Source of the DNA: Wallemia ichthyophaga EXF-994
Taxonomy: Eukaryota; Fungi; Basidiomycota
Direction: 5' to 3'
DNA length: 32,000 bases
Assembly (NCBI RefSeq): GCF_000400465.1
Contig: NW_008806276.1
Span: forward strand, 180,001 to 212,000
Below the pieces are notes generated by a model, which was not told the DNA's origin, made no database searches, and saw only the letters and a list, made by a program, of their open reading frames with translations. Numbering within the stretch: the first letter of the stretch is position 1; the number at the start of each line of letters is the position of its first letter. This document shows, piece after piece, positions 1,772 through 32,000 of the stretch. The translations under genes and the position numbers were made by a program.

Positions 1772-1957
1772 AACAGACAAGGACGATTAGAATCAAGAAC
1801 AATTTCGTGTAATTTTTTGACAACAAATTAAGCATTAAAAGTAAGTTGTGTGATCGGCATAAGTGATAAATAAAAATGAGTCATTGAAATCATAAGAAGC
1901 GAGTGAAATGATTGAGTAAAATGGGTAGAAAGAAGTGATTAGATTGAGCGATGTAAG

Positions 1958-4900
1958 TTAGTCCCGTTCTTTGTTTAATGAGCTTCGACTAAAGTTGGCA
2001 AATTTAGACGACTTGCTTGGTTTCTTAGAGGTGACTGATTGATTATCGCCCGGATCGAGACTTTCACGATTCCTCACTGAGGAAGTCGATGGTCTACCTT
2101 CATTAGGTGACCATTGTAGCCTGACTGTGACATAACCGTTACCTCCAAGCAATTCAATATCAAATTCAGCTGCTTGAGTTGTTAGCAAGATATTTTTGTT
2201 CACACAAAATATAACACCCACCTGAAGTTTCGTTCTTCTCTGGATGAATGTATTGGCCAATCATGATATTATTGTAGCCAATTTGACGATCACCGAAGAG
2301 ATGCTTGTCAACAATCTCTACACTAAACGTTGGCTTTTCAGGTTTAGTGTGCAAAAGGAAAGTTTCATCGAAAGAAGGTTCGGAACTCTTAGAGAGTGCC
2401 TTTCCTTCGATCTTGTATCTTCCCATTCTCAACACAGGTCTGGCTTTAGGCAACTCACGACCTTCTCCTTTAAGATCCCATGCTCTGACGACAGTTACAT
2501 TCAAATCACCTGAGTCGACTTTCGATGCAGGTCTATCGCGCTGAGCATCTGACATCAATTCTCTGGGAGCATCCGCTTCGTCATCTACGAAACCTTCGCT
2601 TCCAGTAGAGGAAGGCTTTTTGGAGAAGCCGAAAATTTGACCAGCCTTGCCGAAAACGCCGCCGACATTATTGCCGATGAAGCCAGCGCCTGAGATGGCG
2701 CCCTTGCCGATATGACCGGCACCATGGGCGACTCCCTTTCCAGCTCCAATACCAATACCGCCGACCTGCGTGAGAGCTCTGCCAGCTTGGCTGAAAGTCG
2801 AAGTGCGCGCACGCGTCTTGACGATGAATGAGGGTTTGAAGACGTAACTGACTTTGATCGTGCCCTGGTCACCGCTTTCGCCATCTTTGAGATCGTAAGT
2901 GAATTCAGTCGACTCGAGTGGCTCGAATGCAGTCAAGTCCACCTTGGCAACACCGAGTAAATCGGCTGCTGACAACCTGTCCCAGTCATAAACTTCAATC
3001 GTGAAGTTTCCATCGACTCTGTTAGGAACCTGGACTTCGAAGAATTCTTCCCACTCTGGATGCAACGTTTTCTTCTTCGTTTCAGTCTTGTATACTCTCT
3101 CGCCGTTGAGGAGAAAAACGGCGTATGGATCAGATTTACCATTGCGATCTGCACTTGCAAGCCCCTTGGCATTGTGGACTTCGACTCTGAGATTGCCCTG
3201 GTTGTTGACAGACTCTCTGAGACTGAGGTCGATATCAACGGGGATGTACTTAGACAAAACCTTCACCTTGGACTGATTATCGCCTGCATCTGATAGAGTA
3301 AATTCTGCCTCTTTGTTGAGCGTGCGGTAGAAAAATTCTCTCATATCCATGCTTGTCTCAGCGTAAACCTGATCATCCTCTTCTTGTGAACCTGTGTTCA
3401 ATCTAATTCTCAGCTGTGAGAATGAAAGCTCGCGGACCATAGCTTCTCCAATGAAATTCCAGTTGGCGTTCTTCGAACGCGCCTTCTCGGTGGTGATCGA
3501 AGGCCAGATTGCGTCGTCAATGAGGAACTCAAGTCGCGTGTTCCTCTGTGCCACCTGTCCTGTATCGCACTTGACAACTATGATTCCCGACTCTAGATAG
3601 TGTTTTGGTGAGATACTAATCAGCATAAATTATTTAACTCACCTCTTTCAAGTAACTCATCTTCATTTAATTCCAAACCAGCACTTTCCTCTTCTTCGGC
3701 AGATGATTTTTCTTTACCCTTTTCATCGCTCTCTCCGTCAATGTTCTCTTCCTTGGCATTCTCTTCCTCCTCCTTCTTGTCTTCTTCCTCTTTCTTCTTT
3801 ACATCTTCCGCAGACTCGAAGGTACTTCCCTTAATCTTCCAAGCAGGGACAAAGTCAGCCTCGAATTCTAGTTCACCCTTATAACCACCCTTGTCAAGCT
3901 TCATAGGAGACGTACGTCTATTTACTCCAGTAGCCATGTATGGTTTGTTCTTTCTCTCGTTCTCATCATCGTTGGGTCTGATAATATCTCTAGCTCTAAG
4001 AGTTGTGTGTCCCAATGGTCTGTCTTTGCCCTGGCTCTGGTAGTCGGCAGCTTCCAAGTAAACGATATCTCTGAGAGAGTGGATCGGTATGTAGAGAACC
4101 TCATTCCATACAGGATTGAGGTTATTATCGATAATATTCGTTCTAGCTTGCACTCTACCAGCGATAATGGCCTTAACGTAAGGATCACTTTTACCGCCGA
4201 AAGCGATCTCAACGTTCTTCAGGTCGTTTGCACGCTTGCAGAAGACTCTCAACAGTCCGATAGGTGGAGTGTACTGGCCTGCTACATCCAGCGCATCATC
4301 CATAGCCACTGACTTGAACGACGCGGACATTCTGATTTTACCACCGTCTTTAGCCAAATCAAACCACTTTCCTTCCTTCTCATTGGTCTCAAGCAAATCA
4401 CTGACATTGACATTGACATGCGCGATTGGGATTGACGCCTTGAAGTTGTGCGCGTGATACACCTTGACTTTCAAACTCGTCTTGTCTTTGTTGGTGACGA
4501 GAAATTCGCCGTGGGAGTCCCATTCAGGCGAATTTGTACCTCTGATCATTTTTGTTTGCTGGACTTGCTTATTTTTCAAGTAAACGCTGGCGGAAGGGTT
4601 TACACGACCAACCTTGGACGCATCTGTGTTGAGATCCTTGGCTTCGTGGATGTATAGTCTGACAACACCAGTTGGGAGATCTGGAACAGCTTCAAGTGAG
4701 TCTCCTTCCTTTGGTGGCTCCATGACTGGGTAGTAGCTCAGATCAAATATGATATCACCTTTTTCTCTACCATTATTGTAGAGCTTTGTCATGACATGTT
4801 CTTGCAAAGGATCATCGGCTAGGGATTGGATGTTGTATGTGGCTAAACCAATGTCTGAGTCTTTGCGATAATCATTGTAATCATAAACGTTAAGTACCAG

Positions 4901-6722
4901 CTGGTCGTTGAGAGAGTTGACGAGTAAATACTTTGTTTCCATCCAGAATGGGTTGTTGGTAGACTTATGAATCGTTGTTTTGTCGTTTATTGTCTTGGAG
5001 TTACCAAGTCTGACGGTAGTGTATGGATTTGGTTCACCACCACCGACTTTGATGGAACGCAGACCTCTAGCTTGACGAAGAGTGAGTACCAATACACCGC
5101 ATGCGGAATCGAGAGCACCGCCAGCGAGAATTTCTTGCAAGTTGATTGTAAAGACGTTAGGATCGAAAATAAGTGGTTGCATCATGTTAAATATCTGTTC
5201 TCTGATAAAGGTGGTCAAACCAGGAATGTAGTTGACATCCAAGCCAGAGTGTTCACCACCGATTGGTATGGCCATGTAGTCGAATTCAGGTTTTTCGATG
5301 AATGACAGATCAACCAATTTGATGTGAGGGAAGTCATTAATCAGGGTAAGATTGACTCTTATGTTACCAGTAAAGCTAAATTCCTTGAGCACAACAGGCA
5401 GACTGACTGAGTATTTACCTTTACCGATAACGGCTTGTAGGACAATCTTTGGGTTGACAGTGCCTTCTGTCTGACCTTCTCCGAGTGCACCCAAGTCTGC
5501 TGGTGTAAATGAAACGTGCCAATCCATGGTGATTTGGTTGTCGGCGGTCGATGGCCATGTTCTGACCTTGAGAATGCGCGGCGCTTTGCTACCAAGGGTG
5601 AGATAACGAAGTCTCGCAGACCTTACGAATCCAGGCTTGCGCTCAGCTATTATAGGCTCAACACTGTTGATAGCTTTTTCACAGATGTATGGCTCGAGGT
5701 GCTCCCAGAAGTTGATTAGTAGATTGTTGACCCAGTCAGCTGACTGAGCCTCTGTTGCAAGTGGAGGTTTCATCAGTTGCCTGGAAATTCCCTCTCTGAC
5801 TTCGTGATCAACTTTTGAGATACTAATATTGTAATAAGTAACAGCAGCTACTGCAACGACAGCCTGTGGGCCCAGGCTGAAGTTGAAGTAGGCAAGAATG
5901 TAAGTGAGTATAGAAGAGACTAAAACGACAGCAGCGTTGTGAAACCATTGTCCATAGAACTTTTCGGGAAGCAAAGTGGAAGTACCATCATCATCATCGA
6001 CACCGTTGAGTTCAACAGAATGAGCGCCTAAGCTGTCTGGGATTTCTTTATCCCTCATGTACCATTTTGGGAGGGAAGTAGAAGGTAACTCATCTGTGGA
6101 GCTGGACAAGTTACCAGGAATATCTTCAACAGCGTAGATAGGACCAGATTCGAAAGCAGCTTCGCCTTCTTTTTTTGTGCTTTGCTGAGGAGTTGACTTC
6201 TGCTGAACTGCAGGAACTTTTGAAGGTTTTGGCTTTGCTGGAGAGTATGTGAGTGTAGGAGAGGGAGATTGTTGGAGACATACGTGGCTCTTCTTTTGGA
6301 GTTGAAGGCTTTGGAAGGTTATCTCCTTCTACACCATAATTTTGATCATTCTTTTGCTCCTCAAGTAATTCAGCTTCTTTGTTGGTTGTGGATTCGTTTG
6401 GATCGAAAGAGTGAACAGGCGCATGCTTTGCAGCCTTCTTAAAGAGAGCTTTAACTTCATTTTCGTTAACGTGGTCGCTATCTTCCCGAGAAATACCAAA
6501 TCTAGGTACAGGAATCGGACCGAATTTCTTCCAAGAAAAACCGGATTTATCAGGTTTATCAGATTTATCATTTGACTTGTTGTTACTGTCATTTGGGATT
6601 TGTGGAACTGGAGGGACATCTTCTTGATGCTGTGGCTGTGGCTGAGGGGCTTTAGAGGATGCGATTGAAGAGGTCCTCGATCTACGCTTGAAAATACCTG
6701 AAGACCGCCTTGAATCTGACAT
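1958..6722 (-). CDS. Tricalbin / extended synaptotagmin (ER-plasma membrane tether: TM hairpin, SMP domain, multiple C2 domains); 4 exons (introns 6238-6283, 3593-3642, 2173-2221)
   Basis: N-terminal VHSFDP motif, hydrophobic hairpin (WFHNAAVVLVSSILTYILAYF), SMP start (SADWVNNLLINFW...LGSKAPRI), and C2 domains (GVLVLTLRQARGL, GKSDPYVK, GNLRVEVHNAKGLASADRNGKSDPY). Three canonical introns join four ORFs in frame. Confidence 0.93.
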
Positions 6723-6895
6723 GTGCTGCTGCGAATGGGGGAATTACGTCGTGGGTGAAATTCAAGGGAAGAAACTGGGAAATTTGGGAGAAAGATGAAT
6801 AAAAAGATATACATTGAGTAATTAAATAATTAATATAATTGATATATCGGGTTGAATACTGTTAATTACACACAGCCAACAACCGTTACAACAGA

Positions 6896-7701
6896 ATGAG
6901 TGAGAATCAAAAGCCAGTACAAGTGAAGCTCGTCCTTCTTGGGGAAGCAGCCGTTGGAAAATCATCCGTCGTTCTGAGGTTCGTTCAAAATGATTTCCAG
7001 GAGTACAAAGAGCCTACGATTGGTGCAGCATTCTTGAGTGGGTGGGGAGTTTAATAATAACTAATTTAACATCAATAAACAGCCCAAAAGTGTAGATTAG
7101 AGGATAAAGTGATTAAATTTGAGATATGGGATACTGCTGGTCAGGAAAGGTTTAGGAGTTTGGCACCAATGTGGGTTTTGAGATGCTTTCAATAAAATCC
7201 ACTTAGAATACTCTCAGGTACTACCGTAACGCTCTCTCTGCTGTAGTCGTTTACGATATAACTTCATCATCCAGCTTCGACAAGGCAAAGAGTTGGGTTA
7301 AGGAACTCCAACGACAGGCCTCTCCAAATGTCATTATAGCCCTTGTCGGTAACAAGCTTGACTTGGTTGAGAAATCTGAGGAGAATGAGGATTATTTAGA
7401 TGACGTAGCATCATTCGATCAAAACGCAGTCTCAGAACCAAGCCAAACTCATTCAAGGGCCATCTCACGTGATGAAGCTCAAGCTTACGCTGAAGAGAGC
7501 AATCTTCTCTTCTTTGAAACATCCGCAAAGACTAGTGAAGGCGTTGTTGAAGTTTTTACTGAAATTGCAAAGAAGATTCCACATGAGCAGATCCTCAATT
7601 CCACTAAATCCAGAGCCCAGGATCAATCACAGCAGAACAACGTAAGCCTCAACTCAACCGAGAACCAACCAAAGCAAGTCGGAGACAATTGTGCCTGTTG
7701 A
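6896..7701 (+). CDS. VPS21: Rab5-family GTPase (Vps21/Ypt51-like); 3 exons
   Basis: Manual translation gives [54 protein letters not shown] and ETSAK, with a C-terminal CxC prenylation motif (CAC*). Confidence 0.92.
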
Positions 7702-7835
7702 GTACCCTTTTCTTAATTATACCAGACACATAAATCGCTTTTTGATGAATATTTTGATTTTTAACAATCGAGTGGGGTGAACTGAGCTGAGAATTCCCCT
7801 ACGAAACAACCACCAACTCAACGAATCAACGAAAA

Positions 7836-8831
7836 ATGGCACCTGTTGAAGGAAAGAAAGGCTTTTCATGGTCAAACATCGCTGTAGGTAGCGTAATGAA
7901 CATGTTTGAAGGTTAGTATTTTGTCTCCTTCCTGTTTGCTATAAGTATCTTACAAACATAAGTATCTACACTTGGTCAGCCACTTGAAGTTTGTAAGACT
8001 ACTCTCTCCGCTCAAAGATCCTTGTCCATGCGTCAAGCCATTTCTCTCATTTACTCGCGTGGTGGTCTCGCTGGTTTCTATCAAGGTCTGATACCATGGG
8101 TGAGTCCTTCTTGAGACACCTTCTACCCATCTCTTTGACACCGTAACCAGGCCTGGATCGAAGCTTCTACAAAAGGCGCCGTTCTTCTTTTCACCGCCGC
8201 TGAAATTGAAAAATACTCCGTTACTGCCGGGATAAGTCCTGCTGCCGCCGGTTTACTCGGTGGTATGGGTGGTGGTATCGCTCAAGCATACGCTACTATG
8301 GGTTTCTGCACCTGTATGAAGACTGCTGAAATTACAAGACACAAGGAGGCCGCATCAGGCATCACCCCTCCATCAACCTGGAAAGTCTTTGGTGATATCT
8401 ACAAAGCTGAGGGTATTGCCGGTATCAACAAAGGTGTCAACGCTGTCGCTCTCCGTCAAATGACCAACTGGGGTTCAAGAATGGGTTTTGCTCGTCTCTC
8501 AGAGAGTCTCATTAGAAAGGCTAGGGGTAAGACAGATGGTGAAAAGCTCAACTTGGCAGACAAGGTCGCTTCTGCTACCTTTGGTGGTGCACTCGCTACT
8601 TGGAATCAACCAATCGAGGTTGTTAGAGTTGAGATGCAATCTATGAGCAAGAGCGCTGACGTCGCCAACAAGCCAAACGGCGTCTTCGGTACTCTCGGCT
8701 ACATCTACAAGGAGAACGGTGTCAAGGGCCTATACCGCGGTGTCACCCCTAGAATCGGTCTCGGTGTTTGGCAAACTATCTGTATGGTTACTTTTAGTGA
8801 TATGGTCCGCGAAGCTCTCGGTGCCAAGTAA
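7836..8831 (+). CDS. YHM2: Mitochondrial carrier, citrate/2-oxoglutarate carrier (Yhm2-like); 3 exons
   Basis: Spliced translation includes [58 protein letters not shown] and [10 protein letters not shown], which are Yhm2-family signatures. Confidence 0.92.
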
Positions 8832-9233
8832 GCCAAGCAAAGCACTTATATCATTCTGTCATTACTTAAAATGTCGTTGTTGTCGTAGGAAATATCATAA
8901 AAGCATGTCATAAACTTTTTTCATTGAATCCATATCGTTGTCATAAAATTCTGTTGCGAGGACAGTTTCTGTCACGATTTACCTTTCGCGTACCTCTCAC
9001 AAATTCAGCGGTGCTAAATTTTTCACTATGCTAAAATTCGATTCAAGAGTACGTAAATCAGCGTTCTTGTAATAGATATGCAACATACAATAAAAAAATC
9101 TCACTACGCCAGAGAAGATCTGAACTAGCTCACATTCCTAACTGCGGTTTTTTTATCAACACATTTCCCCTATTCGCGCTGAATATCACGCTAAATTAAT
9201 AAAGATTGTAAAGTTAGTGCGGAATGAGTAGAG

Positions 9234-9240
9234 TATAAAT
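9234..9240 (+). promoter_or_regulatory. TATA box of the hydrophobin gene
   Basis: TATAAAT about 50 nt upstream of the ATG at 9292, followed by a C/T-rich leader. Confidence 0.55.
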
Positions 9241-9291
9241 ACCTACCGCCTACCTTCCTTCTTTCCACACAACTCATCTCCAATCTTTACA

Positions 9292-9760
9292 ATGATCGCT
9301 CAAACCATTTTCGCTACCGCCCTCATCGCCTCTGTTTCGGCCGGATGGGAAGACAAGAGCAAGATTGGCTCATGTAACACCGGCAAAGTTTCATGCTGTA
9401 AGTTTGGGAGATGTTTAGCTTGACACCATCTCACACCGCCAAGGCGACTTGAACAAGAAGGCTCAATCTAGCACCGGCAAGGATGACTCTCTCATCTCCA
9501 CTGGTGACATTGCTTCTCAAATCGGTGTTCAGTGTGACCAAGTCCCTCTCCTTATCGGTGTTGCATTGCAAGGTTTGTACCTTTTCGTCACCTTGAACAA
9601 TGCTAACAAAACGCTAGATGAATGTAAAAACACCCCAGTCTGTTGCGAGGACATGGAATCAGATGGTCTCATTGGTTTGGGTGCGTTGACGCGTTTGCCG
9701 TGATACCTTTTGCATTGCTAACTTGACACTTCAGGCTGTACCCCTCTCCCAATCATTTAA
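9292..9760 (+). CDS. Class I hydrophobin, about 107 aa; 4 exons (first intron 9398-9443)
   Basis: Signal peptide MIAQTIFATALIASVSA, then eight Cys spaced C-X6-CC-X29-C-X14-C-X5-CC-X12-C after removing three short GT-AG introns. Only partly captured by the ORF track. Confidence 0.92.
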
Positions 9761-9950
9761 GCTGGCGCTTTTAACCTCCTACAAACTGTTTAGCTTTTGT
9801 AATACTACTATTAATCTCGGGTTTTAGACGTTCTCTGAGAGTGAGGATCAGTCTTTTCAAAGACTCAGTATCTTCACAAAAATTTTAATCTAGGCTTAGT
9901 ATACAAGTAGAACTATGGAAAGAAGCTGTTTAAAAATTGGTGCAAACATC

Positions 9951-9961
9951 AAAAAGCAAAA
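9951..9961 (-). terminator. RNA polymerase III terminator (T4 then T5) downstream of the permuted tRNA 5' half
   Basis: The minus strand after G37 reads TTAAAG TTTT GC TTTTT. Confidence 0.65.
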
Positions 9962-9967
9962 CTTTAA

Positions 9968-10044
9968 CCGTAGTCGAATACTCTACCATTGAGCCAGCCG
10001 GCCGCAGTGACCGACGCAGGGCTCGAAACCTGCAACCTTTCGAT
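9968..10044 (-). tRNA. Circularly permuted tRNA-Arg(ACG): 3' half (10044-10008), 4-nt spacer CTGC (10007-10004), 5' half (10003-9968)
   Basis: Minus strand reads ATCGAA AGGTT GCAGG TTTCGAGC CCTGC GTCGGTC A / CTGC / GGCCGGC TG GCTC AATGGTA GAGT A TTCGA CT ACG G. Swapping the halves gives a 73-nt cloverleaf: 7-bp acceptor stem (2 G-U), D stem, anticodon stem TTCGA/TCGAA, T stem GCAGG/CCTGC. The D arm is identical to the ordinary tRNA-Arg(TCT) in this window. One anomaly: an 8-nt T loop. Confidence 0.82.
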
Positions 10045-10126
10045 ATCAGCTTCTCCCATTGAGATATTTCGAACTGAGAGAGTACTGTTGAGCTTATGTG
10101 CTGATTCTGTTACACGCAAAGAATAA

Positions 10127-10795
10127 ATGCAAAAATTTTACAAAACATTCAATTCCCATTGTATCCCAGGAGATGTGGATATCTACGGCAACGAACTAGC
10201 AGACACCGCTAACGATGGTAGAACACTGCCGATCCACAGGACTATGTGGTGTCACCTAACACTTAAAACTTCATACTCAGCAATGCGAAGCAGAATGCGC
10301 GAGCGCTATACAGCACCACTAAAAGTAGATGCCTCCAAAATATCAGACATTAAGTTCAACGCCGCAAAAACATCAGCTGGAAGGCTGACAGCAGCAAAAA
10401 CGGCCAAGATACTCAATGAACTGCCCAGAGCAACGAGATGCCTAACCACCCAGCTACGCTCGGGGCATTTACCTGCGACTAAGTCCTACCTTAAACGTTT
10501 CCGACTGATTGATTCACCTAAATGCAGTGCGTGTGGCACAGAGGACACCATCTCGCATAGAATCTTCTGCAAAAGACATATAATGGCCAGAATCACATTA
10601 AGAAAAAATATTACCAAGATCAATATTCGGTTCGAATTAGTTCCAATACTCAGAAACGCACATTCTCTACGAGCCCTTTACGAGTTCTTCAAACTGCAAT
10701 TGACTACGTACCAAAGATATTCCAGTGGTTCAGCGCAATTGAGAACCAATAACAATTTACAAATTACGACGCTAAACGAGAAACGCCTCCAGTAA
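10127..10795 (+). mobile_element. 5'-truncated non-LTR retrotransposon (LINE, Tad/I-like) ORF2 remnant: C-terminal end of RNase H plus CCHC zinc-knuckle region
   Basis: CIPGDVDIYGNELAD resembles the RNase H motif W[VI]PGHxxIxGNExAD. TQLRSGH followed by CSACGTEDTISHRIFC resembles the LINE C-terminal CCHC region. No RT or endonuclease is present. The 222-codon frame is open. Confidence 0.72.
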
Positions 10796-11279
10796 ATTCG
10801 GCGCCCCCTTTGACTCCTCATTCTTTAAGAAGTATTGTTAGAGGCAGTCTAAACATTTATCGTGTTAACAATATATTCAGGTCAATTTTAGACTAAGACA
10901 CCAGAGAGTGTCATGGAAGTAAGAAATTTATCTTAAATGTATCAATAAAGACCCATTATTTTTTTATAAACCTCTAAAGCCCAGCGAGAGTGGCAAATAT
11001 TTCATTTACTGCCGTGGGATTTCTCTCGAGTGACGAGGAGGGCTTTGTGAGAATCTTGTAAATAGTCTCAACCTTAGCAATTTACATCCTGCTAAATTGA
11101 AATACAAGTTATCATCTCATACGCGTGGAATTGATTGCGTTATCTAAGGCAATGACGAAAGCAGGCGTAGGTTGTTGCAATAATAATTGGCCGCACTTGT
11201 ATATTCTTCAAATAAATCACTTTAATCTATTCCTTTCAAATTATTTTGAAAATTGCATCTTCTTTCTCCCAAACCACCA

Positions 11280-12223
11280 ATGAGCATTTTCTTCAGATTG
11301 CTTGACCTCCCAGTAGAGCTGGTAATGATGATCATAGAGAATTTTGAACACAAAGAAAGACTAGAAGTATTGTCAACTTGCCGACTGATCCGGAAGATGG
11401 ATGAAAAATACATTTACTCGAGCTTAAAAACACCAAATGTCCGCCTATACATCGAGACTGGAATTGACGGCTACGAGATGTGCTCATTAACCAGGGACAC
11501 ATTTGAGAATAGCATCGCTGTCTTGAATGGCATCGCAGCGGACGAGAATCACAGAAAGCTCGTCAAGTGAGCTGAGAGCCTGCTCATATGACAGTGCTAA
11601 CAGTGCTGAATCTTTACAGATCACTCAAACTGACCGCTTACTGCAATTCCTTGCTATCTAGATCGGATATCTATTGGCTGTCAAAAGAATTGACGAGGAC
11701 CTTCGCTCGCCACTTTGACGAGCAACTGGAGTCTCTTACCTACATCAACACGTTCTACTGCGAGTTCGTCGAGAAAACACCATTCAACTTTCCAAATTTG
11801 AAAAAGCTGACGCTAGGAGAGTTGGGTGATAATTTCGCATTCGACAATTGGCTGATGAACGCCCCCAATCTGGAAAAATTGGACATTTTTTGCATGGAAT
11901 GGAGCTATGGTATGTTATCTCATCAAGATATTTGCAGCTCAAGCATCGAGAAGCTGGTTAAAAGGGAGTCTAATTTCCGTCTGAGGATATTTACTTTTGA
12001 GATGTGGCATGCGCCTGAAGATGCCAACGACAACGACAACGACAGGGAAGAGTCTTACGACGAGATTGATCATTGGCACAGTGACTTGATAAGGGCTATA
12101 GCGGGCGTGTCAGATTTCGATGATTTAATGCCTTACGTCGAAAGGTACAATGTTCGCGAGTACCAGATGATTCAAGGATCGCTCAAATTGAACAACTGCT
12201 ACCACGCCTTAGGTCATAGGTAG
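11280..12223 (+). CDS. F-box protein, probably with an LRR-like C-terminal region; 2 exons (intron about 11567-11619)
   Basis: N-terminal LLDLPVELVMMIIENF...LSTCRLIR is F-box-like. FPNLKKLTL and APNLEKLDI are LRR-like repeats. The GTGAGC...TACAG intron joins the two ORFs in frame. Confidence 0.7.
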
Positions 12224-12534
12224 GACCACATTCGATGTGCATGCTTAGCGTAGTATCTGATACCCATAAATCCTATTATATCATTTGTGCACACTTCTTG
12301 TAATGATAATGACAATTAACAGTTTAATACTCTTACTTTCGTTCGATGTGTGTTGTGAAATAGATAGATAGAATTCATAACATATAGTCAAAAGCATTAC
12401 AACGATTAATAATCTTCGCCTATCTATAATTCTTGTGCATTGAAAGCTGACGATTGTAGTGACTCATAGGGTTGTATTTCTTGGCATGTGTGCCGTAAAT
12501 GGAGAAGGAACTACGTGGAGCTACCGGAGGCGCG

Positions 12535-13060
12535 CGGGTGGGTGCTGAGCTGGTTTTTGAAGAATTTTTAGAGAGCTTTGAGAGCTTTTTCATTTGAAAG
12601 CATATATTTCATCTCGAACCTACTCCAATCCATATATCCTCCTCCTCAACGATAATCTTGCTTGATCGATCTTCCTACATCTGAAAATCCTATGTTTGAT
12701 ACTGTCTACTTCATTGCACTTGCTGCAAAGTGGTGAGTCGGACATTTTGAATTGGTATCGGTAAGACTTGGCAACAGGGAAGTGGTTTGAGCGGATCTGT
12801 TTGGCCACACTTCGCGTACCACGGGGAAGCTTGTTGAGCATCCTTGCCGCCTGTGTAGAGGTCATTCTACCCATTGCTCTCTCTGCATCTTTTGACTTTG
12901 GTCCTGGTAAAATACATGCATCTACTCTCAAGAGAGCAGTGTGTCGCTCACGCAGGCGTCTACGGAAAGCGGAGAGAGCCGGCTTGAGAGTGAAGTCAAT
13001 GGAGATCAATAGTTTGTTTATCTCCGCACACCGCAGGTTAGGTTAGTTTAGTGTGGCGTT
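12535..13060 (-). pseudogene. Second, decayed copy of the LINE 3' remnant (homologous to 10127-10795), in inverted orientation
   Basis: FTLKPALSAFRRRLRERHTA aligns with LTLKTSYSAMRSRMRERYTA, and QIRSNHFP...CSKCNEVDSIKHRIFRC with QLRSGHLP...CSACGTEDTISHRIFC. After a frameshift near 12630, RFEMKYMLSNEKALKAL*KFFKNQLST aligns with RFELVPILRNAHSLRALYEFFKLQLTT (stop at 12568-12570). The 5' boundary is approximate. Confidence 0.75.
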
Positions 13061-13207
13061 TCCAGTATATATGATTTTTTTTAAATAACTGCTTATGAAA
13101 AGCCTCGGAATGAAAAGCGTTAAAAGCGTTTGCAGCATCTACCTAGAATTACGTTGAGTTATAGCAACTTTTTGATACATTAGTTTCAATAAGTTGCTAT
13201 TGTCATC

Positions 13208-13310
13208 GCTTTCGTGGCTTAGGGGTTATAGCGCCGTGTTAACACCGGCTCATCTGAGAAGATGAACAGTTGCTCCGCGGAGGTCGCCGGTTCGATTCCG
13301 GCCGAAAGCT
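13208..13310 (+). tRNA. tRNA-Val(AAC) with a 30-nt intron (13245-13274)
   Basis: Acceptor GCTTTCG/CGAAAGC, D arm with GGTTAT, anticodon stem CCGTG/CGCGG, loop TT AAC A|C with the intron at 37/38, T arm GCCGG TTCGATT CCGGC, and a T5 terminator immediately after. Confidence 0.9.
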
Positions 13311-14306
13311 TTTTCACCACGAAAAGTCCTTTTTCTGGCAGAAGCTGATGTTATTTTGCTCTTCGGTCTGACGAAGCACCACAGAGCATCACAGATGAAT
13401 ACAATAGATCCGCTCCTCTTTGTTACGAATGTGTTCATATTCCATTATTGCCGCAAAATCTACTATTCAAAAATGATGAAAATGTCATCCAACCTTATTG
13501 AGGATACAGTAAAAAGAGCAAGGCTTTCGCTTAAGTGGCAATCTTGGAAGAATTAATTGGTAGGTAGTATCAGCTGGATACGGAGAGCTGTAATCGTATG
13601 TCGGTACAGTGGCAGTGGAGAAAGAATCGATCACTCTACTATCCGAATTCAAACTAACTACAAAAATCACCATCAAATTACCTTTTCGAGATACTTTGAT
13701 TATCGGGCTGGTGGCCATAAGTGAGCTCTGAACGGTACAAAAGCAAAATAGGCTCTGAGAAAATGTACACTAATATTAAGGCATGAATGTTACTGATAAA
13801 TATGCAAGTTAATCTAGACCGCTAGTAAAATTTGTAACAAATAATTGCTGGATTGTTTAACTTAACAGAGTCTAATTAGAGGGTACTCGAGATATCGGAA
13901 ATTCCCGCAATAGTCTAATATGAAATCAATTCCCACCAATCGCCTACTTCCTCATTTCTAATCCCGCACAGGCACATATCACTGATAGTAGATGGTTCCT
14001 AGTCAAAACGGAGAGAAGCCACGCTACAAATTTGTAATCCTCAGGCCGAATTAAGAGTATAACAACTAATGTATAAAAATAAGTACATGATACCTAAATC
14101 CCAATCTGAAAATCTATTGCAAAAAAATTGATTTTATCCATGAACTAAATCCAGTTCAACTGATCCATCCATCCATAATTCTAATTAATGTGTTGTTTTG
14201 TAATTGCTATCGTTGCGTGTCATGATATACTGTGTATAAGGTTGTTTAGGGGTGTGTAGATTGTGTAAGGATGTCTAAAGTGTGCTAGTATGCGCACTAA
14301 TATCAT

Positions 14307-15935
14307 CTATACTGCGCAAGAGAATGGATGGTCGAATGTGCCATTTTCATAACCAGCCTTGATATTCTCAACTGCTGAGTAGATGCCGAGCGGGGTGATG
14401 ACCGCACTGAAGGCGATGCAGAGACATGCGAGTGCGATGAATGGTGAGCGCTTCAATGTGAATACGTGCTTCCAGGAAGGCTCGCTGGTGCGATAAAGGT
14501 GAAGAATACAGACACCTGGCAAACCGAGAGCGAACCAAACACTGAAGATTGAGCTGATGATAGAAAGCATTTCACTGAAGAATGGAATGAGGTTTGCAAT
14601 GACCCATCCAAATATCCAGAATGAACCGACAATACCCATCCAGGCGAAACGCATCCTCCACGACTTTTCAGTGAGACGCTCAGAGTGTCTGAAAGCCTGG
14701 ACGTAGACAAGCTTGGCACCGGCAGCAACTGGGACAACACCGGCGACGAAAATTGAAATAAGGGCGATGGCATAGGCCGTAATCATGACAGGACGAGCTG
14801 TCATGGTGAGAGAAGGTGATGTAACATATTGACCACCGAATGAGTAGATTGTAGCGCCTACTATGGTGTAGAAGGTGATAGAGAGGACTTGGACGATACC
14901 CAAACTCTTCTTGAAGTCGTCTGGTCTCTTCATTTCACTGACGACAGTGAGGACGATTGCTTGACCACCCCAACCGAAAATGATGTTTGTGAGAGCGCTA
15001 ATAGTACCGATAAGACCATGGTTTTCGAAAGCGTACCAATGGATGGGCTCATCACCTGGTGAGACAAGTCTGCTATCGTCTTGGACACCAGTTGCGATAA
15101 TAGTGATGAAGGAGGCAGTGAGAATTGCGGTAACAGATGCAATTGAGAGGAAGGTCAATTTCTCCAATCTACGCGATAGCGACATGAGGAAGGAGACAAC
15201 CGCCATAACGACTGTCCATACGATACTGCAAACGAGGTCGTTGTTGCCAATCATCTTTCTAAATGCGATACCACCGGAGAGGACGTGGCTAGCTGCCATG
15301 AAAACGGACTTCAAAACGAGACCATATCCAAATATGATTCCACCAACTTCACCAAACATAATTCTACCAGCATCACCGTAGTTCATACAACCAGGATACT
15401 TCTTCTTGAACTCAACCAGCCAGATACCAGTCAACCAGCACAACATCCCGAGGAAGAAGGTAGTGAAAACACCACCGAACATACCCATTTTGTGGAAGTT
15501 TGATGGGAATGAAAGGATACCAAGAGCGACTTGCTCACAAGTAATCAATAAACCTGCACTGATCCAGCCCATGTTGCGGAAATTGACCGCACCTTCTTTG
15601 TGTTCTGCTTGAGCAGAGAATGGGTCGACTGTGAGGGTATTGTTAGGTGGAGTAAACAAGGCGTAAAGCAAACTCACCAGTAGCGTCGACTTCTTCAACA
15701 GGATCCAAAGTTGCTCTGAAATGAGGCTCTTGCTTTTCGGCTTCTTGGTCTGTCTTCGACATGCTGCCGATGCTTGATGTTCTTTCGAAGCTGTTGTGCT
15801 TTTCGTCGCTCACTAAGGCAGAGTTAGATCAGTGCATCAAGTTTGACTGGCTGAGGAGTGGCTGGCAATCTTATCTTAACAAGAGAAAGACAAGGCACTA
15901 GACACTCATAGCAATGTCTTTTGGTTATACTCACT
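14307..15935 (-). CDS. Transmembrane amino-acid transporter (AAAP/Aa_trans family, Mtr-like neutral amino-acid permease); introns 15813-15934 and 15629-15677
   Basis: About 11 hydrophobic segments, with NMGWISAGLLITCEQVALGILSFP, NYGDAG and SEMKRPDDFKK. The N-terminus was reconstructed by splicing; the start codon is split by intron 1 (A|TG). Confidence 0.88.
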
Positions 15936-18722: not shown

Positions 18723-18830
18723 TACTTCAGACGGGGCTCGAACCCGCAACCTTTGGATGGCTAGTTCAACTCGGTTTGAACCCTTCGATGATACTAGAAG
18801 TCCAATACTCTACCATTGAGCCACTGAAGC
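18723..18830 (-). tRNA. tRNA-Arg(TCT) with a 36-nt intron (18759-18794)
   Basis: GCTTCAG TG GCTC AATGGTA GAGT A TTGGA CT TCT A [intron] A TCCAA AGGTT GCGGG TTCGAGC CCCGT CTGAAGT A. A T6 terminator lies at 18697-18702. Confidence 0.93.
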
Positions 18831-24497: not shown

Positions 24498-26412
24498 TTA
24501 CAAACTACTCACATATTCGATGAGATGTTCCACAATTTCACGTTGTGTGGGTGATCCATCGTTATTTGAAGGTTGTTCGCCCATGTTATCAGCGTACTCA
24601 TGTAGAATAGATGTAACATCCTTGAATGACACTCCGCGACGGTTGAGGAGCAACTCAGTGTGGTCTTTGATTCCGTCGTCTTCCATCACTAGCCAGGCCA
24701 AAACGTAGTCTGATAGCTGCAAGGTAAACAACCCATCTTCCAATCTACCTAGGTAGGCCTCGTCTTCTTCTATATCCATCTGACTATCCTGTTCAATGCG
24801 TACTTTCACTCTACTCGCAGCGTTTTCACGAATCTCCAACAATCTATCAACTTTCTCGTAATCATTCTCGACAAACTTGGTTAACAAACGAACTCTGCCG
24901 AGTGTGTCTGATCCCAAGTTGGAAAATAATGACACTAGTATACCCAAAAGATGTTCTTCCTGTTCTTGTACCGATACAGCTCCAAGTGCGCTCTTCTTAT
25001 GAGGAACTTTATTCATGAATGCACCAAATAAGCTTGTCAGCCCATTGGCTTCGATAAATGCTTCACTATTGAGTGAGCCTTCTGGTCCTGACATGGCATG
25101 ATCTAATGTCTTGATAGCGCGTGACCTTGACATCAACTTCTCCTGTGCTATCAGTACCATCAAGTCGACTCCTTCCGCATCCTTGAACTGAACCTTTGCG
25201 AGTGGTTCGGCCAGCACTGTACAGAGTGCGTTATAAGCGTTCTCCAGAAACTCCAATTCTTCAGCATCTTTGGGGTCTTTTTTCATATAGTGCTGAATTG
25301 TGTTGTGAGTGTTTTTGATGGATATTTTATATTCAACCCACCGACAACGACTGCAGAATACTATCAAGACCATCTTTTTGCTCCAACACGGCCATTCTAT
25401 TCTTAGACGAATCCTGTAGCACGATAGCTAGGATTTCTGACGCGTATTGCTTATTCTGGTCGTACTCTACACGAGTGATGCGCTTGAGCAACCAAGGTAA
25501 TATGTTGGTGGATGAAATCAGCACCTCTGCCAGCTCTGGCCTGAGTGAAATCAAATTCTCAAGTAAAGCGAGAGTATGATAAACACCCTCGACATCGCTA
25601 TCTTGATCCTCGTTCAATCTCTTCAGATTAGATACCAGTAATTCTAATATCTGAAGCTGTAGGATGGTGTCTACGAATGAGTTAAGATGAATTCTACCCT
25701 GATCAACGTCATCTACGGCATCCAAGATATCCTCATCAGTCAACTCCTCTAGCACTTCGACCACATCAAGCGAAATATCTGTATTATCATGAGATAACAA
25801 ACCAACCAGCTGCTCCGTTGCGCCAGTGTTGATAAGCTGTGGATAGGATATAGATGGATTCTGTGCGAAAGTTTTGAGTTGATGTAACGCGCTATCCAGA
25901 TCAGCCTCTGAGTCAATAAATTGATGTGGATCGTCTGGGTATTTACCTCTAAGCTGAGTATTTTTGCTAATGACTCGCTCTAATTGCTGTAGCTGCTTCT
26001 TAATTGACGCTGGTGACAGTGTCAACTCCTCGCCGCCTTTATCGGCTTTATCGAATACGTCGAGTATTGTTGACTGCTCTTCCGTCAATCCGCCACCAAA
26101 GAATCTACCGTCTTCGTCGTCTTCTTCAAATTCGTCGTTGTTAGCATCAATGTACTCGACTGTATCGTCTTCATCTTCATCTGCTATCGTCACAGCTCTA
26201 CCCTTTCCTTTACCGTTGTCTGGTGCTGATTGTGCGTCATCCTGATTTTCCTGAAGCCTGACTTTCTTGATTGCTTCCTCGGATGCTGGCTCGAATCTGC
26301 GTTTATTCTTACCCGAAGGTAGTTGAGGGAGCTTGAACATTTTAGAGACCTTTAATCAAATCTGTAAGTTACCGGATTCGAACCTAGGGCTCTCTAGAGA
26401 ACTCACATCCAT
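24498..26412 (-). CDS. CTNNBL1: Beta-catenin-like protein 1 (NTC/Prp19-associated splicing factor); introns 26350-26406 and about 25330
   Basis: EDDEDGRFFGGG, LRGKYPDDPHQFIDSEADLD, LLSHDNTDI, NKQYASEILAIVLQ, EELEFLENAYNALC and KYDRL-like EKVDRLLE. The first exon MD splices to VSKMFKLP. Confidence 0.92.
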
Positions 26413-31864: not shown

Positions 31865-32000
31865 AAATCCGAATATATTGTTGAGACGATACATGTTTAA
31901 AACTGCTTCCATCAACACTTCTTAAAGCATGAAGATTCAAAGGGGGTGTGGAATTTGCTGGAAGCGTTTCTTGATTAGCATCGTAATCTCTAAATTGTTG

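Follow-up and report, generated by a model that had tools for sequence, protein, structure and literature searches.

Circularly permuted transfer RNA (tRNA) genes are a rare class. As of a 2014 review, 34 of them were listed from six algae and one archaeon (PMC3978253). The same review notes that most eukaryotes lack permuted tRNA genes, though a junction between nucleotides (nt) 37 and 38 should be processable, and that expression through a circular intermediate was shown experimentally just for Cyanidioschyzon merolae and some green algae (PMC3978253). Two other sources, a 2026 review and the tRNAscan-SE 2.0 paper, still mention permuted tRNAs in algae and archaea only. The present work concerns a locus in a stretch of 32,000 nt from the basidiomycete fungus Wallemia ichthyophaga EXF-994 (contig NW_008806276.1, positions 180,001 to 212,000; hereafter the window), for which a preliminary description had proposed a functional, permuted nuclear tRNA-Arg(ACG) gene and had known of no fungal example. 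Full-text literature searches likewise revealed no permuted tRNA gene described from a fungus, and the Wallemia gene would be the first outside algae and archaea in the literature searched. The closest parallels to it are the genes of the prasinophytes Ostreococcus and Micromonas and of the Bigelowiella natans nucleomorph (Maruyama et al. 2010; PMC3978253). Judging from sequence comparison, the locus probably is a functional, circularly permuted nuclear tRNA-Arg(ACG) gene of type II, kept at one syntenic locus across the genus Wallemia (Wallemiomycetes).

By its same-strand order of a 3' half, a short spacer and a 5' half, the locus qualifies as a circularly permuted tRNA gene. The exact coordinates (Table 1) confirm the minus-strand layout given in the preliminary description, including the 4-nt spacer and the runs of four and five T, and the stem complementarity and the position of the break, which it had also claimed, can be read in the sequence. 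It can be seen that, first, the acceptor strands GGCCGGC and GTCGGTC are complementary with two G-U pairs, and so are the anticodon-stem strands TTCGA and TCGAA. Secondly, all species have the break precisely between G37 and A38, which is the type II (37/38) junction and a splicing-endonuclease site. When the halves were joined 5'-then-3', ARAGORN called a tRNA-Arg(acg) of 73 nt with a complete cloverleaf. U8, A14, G18G19, A21, U33, T54-T55-C56-R57-A58 (as DNA) and the G53:C61 pair are readable in the sequence. CCA is not encoded, A73 being followed by CTGC or CTAC in W. ichthyophaga and by A in W. mellicola, so that the gene is of the eukaryal type.

That standard scanners miss such a gene had been foreseen. 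With default settings, ARAGORN returned zero tRNAs from the whole window in native order, and the Rfam tRNA model did not detect the permuted locus, its only matches being two ordinary genes with introns (13208-13310 and 18723-18830). A scan of our own was also made, in which the flanks of every 7-bp acceptor-like hairpin with a loop of 1-40 nt were re-joined and passed to ARAGORN with introns allowed; it leans on the anticodon-loop intron model of ARAGORN, and permuted genes of types I, III and IV are outside its scope. Among 14,106 candidate hairpins in ~230 kb, two loci only were flagged, the permuted locus and its W. mellicola orthologue, so that chance falls far short of explaining the pattern. 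With up to 3 mismatches allowed, each half has a single match in the window (chance expectation 0). An explanation by a long intron or by spare halves was rejected on the same searches of the window, which gave no second copy of either half within 3 mismatches, no T arm near the 5' half and no intact 5' half near the locus; the preliminary description had stated as much, and the leader holds just a 12-nt D-arm-like stretch. A tRNA-derived short interspersed nuclear element was rejected as well: each half has one match in the window and, in 288 kb, none away from the orthologous locus, no body sequence is repeated, and each species has flanks of its own.

The permuted order, whose fate in relatives the preliminary description had considered informative, is kept in three Wallemia species. 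The source belongs to Fungi; Basidiomycota; Wallemiomycotina, and its locus in the deposited EXF-994 assembly (GCA_000400465.1, KE007226.1; L018) is 100% identical to window 1836-14831. The order is present in EXF-994 and three further W. ichthyophaga strains, in 12 genomes or contigs of W. mellicola and in W. hederae (L015, ~8430-8505). The W. mellicola copies are those of the CBS 633.66 reference (L016, 7913-7986), of ten further assemblies and of an independent Joint Genome Institute (JGI) metagenome contig, L014. The latter was the one contig returned when the JGI metagenomes were scanned with the 3' half as a pattern, a T loop of 7 or 8 nt being allowed; it has the same permuted order with different flanks, and it is assigned to W. 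mellicola because it encodes a carrier protein with 100% identity to the one in CBS 633.66. Synteny is shared by all three species, the genes being tricalbin, a Rab5-like GTPase, a YHM2-type carrier, a hydrophobin and, convergent with the hydrophobin, the permuted tRNA. The best named relatives of the window tricalbin are in Basidiomycota, at ~40% identity.

The mature positions of the tRNA are identical in 71 of 71 cases between W. ichthyophaga and W. mellicola, and in 66 of 71 between either of these and W. hederae (168-column alignment A1). In the same alignment, identity is only 32-46% in the 60-nt leaders and 23-47% in the 30-nt trailers. Adjoining coding DNA is 67-80% identical between the species. 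The 5' half is identical in W. mellicola at 36/36 positions, and the 3' half is identical except for an extra T private to EXF-994. Among the 12 W. mellicola sequences the 73 nt made up of halves and spacer are invariant, every variant being in the leader or the trailer, and the few polymorphisms of W. ichthyophaga are distributed in the same way. Between species the spacer varies: CTGC in EXF-994, CTAC in the other W. ichthyophaga strains, A in W. mellicola and CCAC in W. hederae. In this last species (L015, ~8465-8468) the spacer places an encoded CCA after A73, a feature of archaeal and not of eukaryal permuted tRNAs; it is probably a coincidence, because W. ichthyophaga and W. mellicola are without it.

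The differences in W. hederae are informative as to how the two halves are related. Its 5' half has three changes, two of which are compensated in the 3' half, so that four of the five differences form two compensatory pairs across the halves (U28-A42 to C28-G42 and C3-G70 to A3-U70), the fifth being in the D loop. All 24 pairs tested, 21 cloverleaf pairs among them, are standard in 7/7 sequences, and two pairs are changed on both sides. As controls, 10 of 500 shuffles did as well, and sliding the partners by 1-3 columns reduced pairing to 21-43%. In the sequences compared, this conservation pattern is that of an RNA with two parts that would work jointly as one tRNA, and not that of a decaying relic. 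We regard it as almost certain that the permuted order exists and that purifying selection acts on it.

Signals at the splice junction were then compared with those of ordinary introns. Given the two intron-containing tRNA genes of the window, this fungus must possess the splicing machinery. The unconstrained minimum free energy of the 125-nt precursor says nothing either way, and precursor folds were computed with the cloverleaf imposed. In the constrained fold of W. ichthyophaga, the anticodon stem is followed by unpaired nt 32-34, a 5-bp helix (35, 36, 37, +1 and +2 with -3 to -7) and a 3-nt bulge consisting of -2, -1 and nt 38. The intron-containing pre-tRNA-Arg(TCT) of the window (18723-18830) has exactly this layout, and the intron of tRNA-Val(AAC) likewise has a 3-nt bulge closed at -3. 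In all three species, positions -5 to -3 of the leader read YYG (CUG, CCG and UCG) and form standard pairs with C35-G36-G37, while the leaders are otherwise unalignable. A leader-trailer duplex is predicted at -15.2 kcal/mol in W. mellicola (0/1000 shuffles as good) and at -19.4 kcal/mol in W. hederae (2/1000). The predicted relaxed bulge-helix motif is thus conserved, and it fits the hBH description of type II genes (PMC3978253).

Possible transcription signals flank the gene on both sides. Runs of T follow the 5' half in every species, T4 and T5 in W. ichthyophaga, T7 in W. mellicola and T6 in W. hederae, and no T run is found within the spacers of 1-4 nt in any of them. Upstream, a block with the pattern ACA.AA.CT is invariant and at the same distance in the three species (CACATAAGCT in W. 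ichthyophaga, TACACAAACT in W. mellicola, CACACAAACT in W. hederae); two of them, W. mellicola and W. hederae, have a TATA-like TATACA leading into the block. The upstream regions of the ordinary Wallemia tRNA genes compared are without such conservation. The block is a candidate promoter or start-site element. Between this block and the 3' half, the W. ichthyophaga leader contains a stretch resembling an A box and D arm, which in local alignment with its own 5' half is identical at 11 of 12 positions (58/2000 shuffles as good). The corresponding stretch of W. mellicola, TCAATGGT, is matched by 221/2000 shuffles, and local alignment of the W. hederae leader with its 5' half gave nothing significant. 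The leader copies of the D-loop core, CTCAATGG and TCAATGGT, lie ~28-32 nt past the upstream block and ~35-40 nt before the B box, and give the normal A-to-B order and spacing. This stretch may be a remnant of a lost upstream 5' half, a working pseudo-A box, or both, a reading that we offer tentatively and at somewhat less than even odds; the remnant is what the duplication-and-loss model of origin predicts (PMC3978253).

A pathway that would lead from this locus to a tRNA can be outlined. RNA polymerase III (Pol III) would make one precursor consisting of leader, nt 38-73, the 1-4 nt spacer, nt 1-37 and trailer, starting upstream of the 3' half, near or after the block at about -56 to -47, and stopping at the T run. 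The body of the precursor would fold as a tRNA, with the spacer closing the acceptor stem and the anticodon stem joining the two ends of the transcript. The leader YYG would pair with C35-G36-G37, leaving -2, -1 and nt 38 bulged as in ordinary Wallemia tRNA introns, and a further leader-trailer helix may keep the precursor ends together. The tRNA splicing endonuclease (Sen complex) would then make two cuts, one behind nt 37 and one in front of nt 38. Trl1, the fungal tRNA ligase, would seal nt 37 to nt 38 into a circle, and Tpt1 would take off the 2'-phosphate at the junction. The spacer would be released by RNase P and RNase Z, with cuts at G1 and behind A73. CCA addition and the conversion of A34 into I34 by Tad2/Tad3 would complete a tRNA reading CGU, CGC and CGA. 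We consider it likely, with good but not full confidence, that the locus yields a working tRNA-Arg(ICG) through such a circular intermediate.

One claim of the preliminary description has to be modified. The 8-nt T loop that it had noted, GGTTTCGAG (TTT at window 10028-10026), is indeed present in the EXF-994 reference assembly, but it is unique to that assembly. The other three W. ichthyophaga strains (GCA_004917845.1, GCA_004917865.1 and GCA_004918895.1), W. mellicola and W. hederae all have a normal 7-nt T loop, GGTTCGAGCC. The EXF-994 reference is an Illumina short-read SOAPdenovo assembly (W. ichthyophaga genome paper). The extra T is either an assembly error or a private mutation of the type strain, and is not a property of the gene. 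The wider claim, a functional permuted tRNA-Arg(ACG) gene in a fungus, gains support from the order kept at the orthologous locus, the conservation of the mature sequence, the compensation across the halves, the YYG triplet and the T run, all of which make it probable.

Several observations weigh against a functional permuted gene. If the 8-nt T loop is real, EXF-994 tolerates a probably impaired copy. Only three distinct species sequences are available, and the covariation therefore rests on one lineage, W. hederae. The leader-trailer duplex of W. ichthyophaga (-6.6 kcal/mol, 284/1000 shuffles as good) is not significant, and shuffled sequences fold as well as the unconstrained precursor (z -0.10). 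A strict bulge-helix-bulge (BHB) motif, with 32-35 paired to -6 to -3, was tried by eye and fails past C32:G-3 in all three species; the predicted fold puts the 5' cleavage site inside or at the end of a helix. In W. mellicola, the 1-nt spacer prevents a full 7-bp acceptor stem in the linear precursor. The A box is downstream of the B box, unlike normal TFIIIC geometry, and a B box before an A box is regarded as unsuitable for TFIIIC (PMC3978253). The upstream block and the A-box-like leader stretch are no more than suggestive signals (for the stretch, p ~0.03 in W. ichthyophaga, ~0.11 in W. mellicola and not significant in W. hederae). Finally, gene conversion from conventional Arg(ACG) copies, if these exist, could keep unused halves tRNA-like.

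Some of these points would suit a conserved tRNA-like element that is not matured, either a structural RNA of the YrlA kind or a TFIIIC/B-box chromatin boundary acting at the DNA level. The only Rfam match in native order is in fact YrlA (RF02553; 26.5 bits, E 0.0018), which has the same order of arms, a B box is present, and the order of the A and B boxes is ill-suited to the transcription of a normal tRNA gene (PMC3978253). However, the YrlA score is far under the gathering score of 69, YrlA is bacterial, and the match covers just the common layout of T arm, acceptor stem and D arm; we read it as an echo of the permuted layout and not as family membership. A DNA-level site needs no compensatory RNA pairs in the acceptor and anticodon stems. 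Nor would a tRNA-like element need an intact anticodon loop (CU-ACG-GA) split over the ends of the transcript, or a leader triplet matching nt 35-37 and placed as in a real intron, and all key positions of a translating tRNA are kept. Such an element is improbable, at less than one chance in ten.

A relic, in which a conventional and possibly intron-containing tRNA-Arg(ACG) gene was duplicated in tandem and lost its outer halves, the inner ones being dead and tRNA-like by chance or by ectopic gene conversion, seems to us slightly less probable again. Tandem duplication with loss of the outer parts is the standard model of origin (PMC3978253). A decayed upstream 5' half would fit the D-arm-like leader stretch in W. 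ichthyophaga and W. mellicola, the aberrant T loop of the EXF-994 copy points the same way, and the region may be regarded as rearranged because retroelement fragments adjoin it. Against this, the halves are 71/71 and 66/71 identical whereas the flanks are at 23-47%, and neutral DNA there is no longer alignable; the two compensatory changes preserve pairs across the halves. Gene conversion cannot explain the YYG triplet, the T run, the upstream block or the leader-trailer helices significant in two species, and conversion tracts must separately reach two 36-nt patches. In the entire JGI metagenome collection, moreover, the 3' half matched the permuted locus and nothing else. A simple pseudogene or decayed tandem duplicate was rejected on the same kind of evidence, the mature sequence being 93-100% identical, with no broken pair and two compensated ones. 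An artefact or local misassembly of the EXF-994 scaffold, named as a possible refutation in the preliminary description and suggested by the short-read assembly, the T unique to it and the reference-guided assembly of the other W. ichthyophaga strains (0.95 similarity threshold), is refuted for the gene order and of negligible probability overall, because the same order recurs independently in the W. mellicola CBS 633.66 reference, in the metagenome contig and in W. hederae, whose 76-80% identity to W. ichthyophaga is under the guiding threshold and makes it independent of the EXF-994 scaffold.

Whether a functional permuted gene would be the only source of this tRNA is a separate question. 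No conventional Arg(ACG) gene was found in the 288 kb of sequence examined, and the fact that the single JGI match is the permuted locus is weak evidence that W. mellicola is without a conventional gene having the same 3' half. The tRNA genes of W. ichthyophaga total 11.55 kb by tRNAscan-SE 1.23 (W. ichthyophaga genome paper); multi-copy tRNA families are plausible, because this amounts to an estimated 130 genes or so. Two Logan contigs (SRR25394065, L012, and SRR25393947, L021), ~99.3-99.4% identical to the window, both end at 9992 in the D arm. This shared end could be a branch of the assembly graph from another copy, for example a conventional Arg(ACG) gene, and it misfits a simple k=31 repeat model. 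It is possible, though on balance doubtful, that the permuted locus is the sole Wallemia tRNA-Arg(ACG) gene, that CGU, CGC and CGA are decoded by way of Sen/Trl1 circularisation, that Pol III uses the leader pseudo-A box together with the B box and the upstream element, a promoter solution unlike the TATA-only model proposed for algae, and that the gene is the first of its kind in an opisthokont and of independent origin.

Table 1. Features of the permuted tRNA-Arg(ACG) locus and its surroundings, in window coordinates.
Feature	Position	Strand	Description
tRNA-Arg(ACG) 3' half, nt 38-73	10044-10008	minus	ATCGAAAGGTTGCAGGTTTCGAGCCCTGCGTCGGTCA; from sequence and ARAGORN on the re-joined halves
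Parts of the 3' half	10008-10044	minus	anticodon-stem 3' strand, variable loop, T arm with B box, acceptor 3' strand, discriminator A
Intervening spacer	10007-10004	minus	CTGC, between the 3' and 5' acceptor ends
tRNA-Arg(ACG) 5' half, nt 1-37	10003-9968	minus	GGCCGGCTGGCTCAATGGTAGAGTATTCGACTACGG; from sequence and the re-joined ARAGORN call
Parts of the 5' half	A box 9981-9996	minus	acceptor 5' strand, D arm with A box, anticodon-stem 5' strand, CU-ACG-G
Trailer	9967-9951	minus	TTAAAGTTTTGCTTTTT / UUAAAGUUUUGCUUUUU; T4 at 9961-9958, T5 at 9955-9951; Pol III terminator-like
Leader triplet CUG (-5 to -3)	10047-10049	minus	complementary to C35-G36-G37; closes the 3-nt bulge holding the 3' cleavage site
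A-box-/D-arm-like leader stretch	10063-10052	minus	CTCAATGGGAGA, 12 nt; compare CTCAATGGTAGA in the true 5' half
Conserved upstream block	10091-10100	minus	CACATAAGCT; -56 to -47 from nt 38; pattern ACA.AA.CT, columns 6-15 of A1
Retroelement-like open reading frame fragment	10127-10795	plus	faces the permuted gene head-to-head and begins ~30 nt upstream of the block; does not belong to the gene
Fragment 47% identical (protein) to the preceding	12620-13009	minus	head-to-head upstream of tRNA-Val; weak zf-RVT match, E 0.065, below threshold
Part of a third copy	31871-31999		at the window edge; 83% DNA identity to 10751-10878

The surroundings of the gene contain retroelement remains. The retroelement-like fragments of W. 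ichthyophaga share a GNELAD motif and a C-terminal Cys/His knuckle, and Pfam gave nothing significant for them, just the zf-RVT match in Table 1. They may represent a non-long-terminal-repeat (non-LTR) family that targets tRNA genes in Wallemia. The W. mellicola locus has, ~1 kb upstream of the tRNA, a gag fragment of copia type (Retrotran_gag_2, 31.2 bits; L016, 8971-9633), for which most population assemblies of that species carry an annotation. On the corresponding side, W. ichthyophaga has a different retroelement. Retroelements cluster upstream of Pol III genes in yeasts and Dictyostelium. By this analogy, the adjoining retroelements may be taken as circumstantial support for Pol III activity at the locus.

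On the other side of the tRNA is a class I-type hydrophobin gene (Pfam Hydrophobin in annotated relatives), at window ~9280-9800 (plus), L014 551-940 and L015 7636-8002. It ends ~160-190 bp from the terminator of the tRNA gene, to which it is convergent, and no other gene of the syntenic block evolves as fast (67% DNA identity). A contig from SRR25399871 (L001) is ~80% identical to W. ichthyophaga and W. hederae and ~74% to W. mellicola, and probably represents a further Wallemia species; it ends inside the hydrophobin gene, ~400 bp short of the tRNA. When the amino-acid transporter on the far side of the locus was used as the query, no further lineage was found. Ten loci of a more distant relative that recurs in many metagenomes (L002-L011; tricalbin 64% identical) share the pairing of tricalbin and diacylglycerol kinase with the window, and they have different genes upstream and no tRNA.

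Two further observations were made in the window. A perfect B-box consensus, GGTTCGAATCC, at 26374-26384 (minus) stands just upstream of an open reading frame without any tRNA-like context and is probably a chance match. In addition, a 14-nt inverted match (13/14) links 10045-10058 with 13336-13349; one partner, TGGGAGAAGCTGAT, abuts nt 38 and the other, TGGCAGAAGCTGAT, is 26 nt downstream of tRNA-Val, so that both are at the borders of tRNA genes. The length of the match is that expected by chance in 5 kb.

If the proposed reading as a functional permuted gene is true, standard opisthokont machinery, that is, a ruler-type Sen endonuclease, the ligase Trl1 and a Pol III dependent on A and B boxes, would maintain a permuted gene over evolutionary time. 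It would support the repeated origin of permuted genes from existing tRNA genes. The strain called W. sebi by Zajc et al. is, as we take it, CBS 633.66, now W. mellicola; on their dating the gene would be at least that old, and its flanks are already saturated with change. Since ARAGORN and the Rfam tRNA model miss the gene, the tRNA sets of Wallemia, and possibly those of other fungi, may lack or undercount Arg(ACG). W. mellicola is culturable, and the gene can be tested in Saccharomyces cerevisiae, including the reading of the swapped A and B boxes by Pol III.

Compared with known systems, the Wallemia gene resembles an ordinary fungal intron-containing tRNA gene such as tRNA-Arg(TCT) in its cleavage positions and local fold and, presumably, in the enzymes used. 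Unlike an ordinary intron, its 'intron' is open-ended and consists of leader and trailer, so that ligation would circularise the RNA rather than join linear exons, and the acceptor ends would be cut from a closed loop. With the archaeon Thermofilum pendens (Chan et al. 2011) it shares an intervening sequence as short as 1 nt, found there in tRNA-Tyr and here in W. mellicola (PMC3978253); the T. pendens genes differ in being of type IV (59/60), in their introns and encoded CCA, and in depending on a BHB-dependent archaeal endonuclease. The logic of the gene and its presumed maturation, a circle made by endonuclease and ligase and then opened by RNase P and RNase Z, are those of C. merolae (Soma et al. 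2007), in which 6 of 11 permuted genes are of type II (PMC3978253). In contrast to Wallemia, C. merolae has many permuted genes, four junction positions, a strict BHB and extra introns, as well as TATA-dependent transcription with no recognisable TFC1 or TFC3 (PMC3978253). Wallemia has the canonical junction only, and its other tRNA genes are ordinary intron-containing ones with unconserved upstream regions.

The likeness is greatest to the type II genes of the prasinophytes and the nucleomorph, which have the 3' half upstream, a short intervening sequence, the 37/38 junction, a relaxed hBH-like motif there instead of a strict BHB, as is predicted for Wallemia, a T stretch after the 5' half, no encoded CCA and an ordinary mature sequence. 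From these the Wallemia gene differs in several respects. It belongs to a fungus, an opisthokont, and its isoacceptor, Arg(ACG), is absent from the 34 listed genes (PMC3978253). Its spacer is of 1-4 nt, against 5-64 nt in those algae. It is the single such gene in the Wallemia sequence available, at one syntenic locus genus-wide. Its leader carries a conserved upstream block and an A-box-like stretch.

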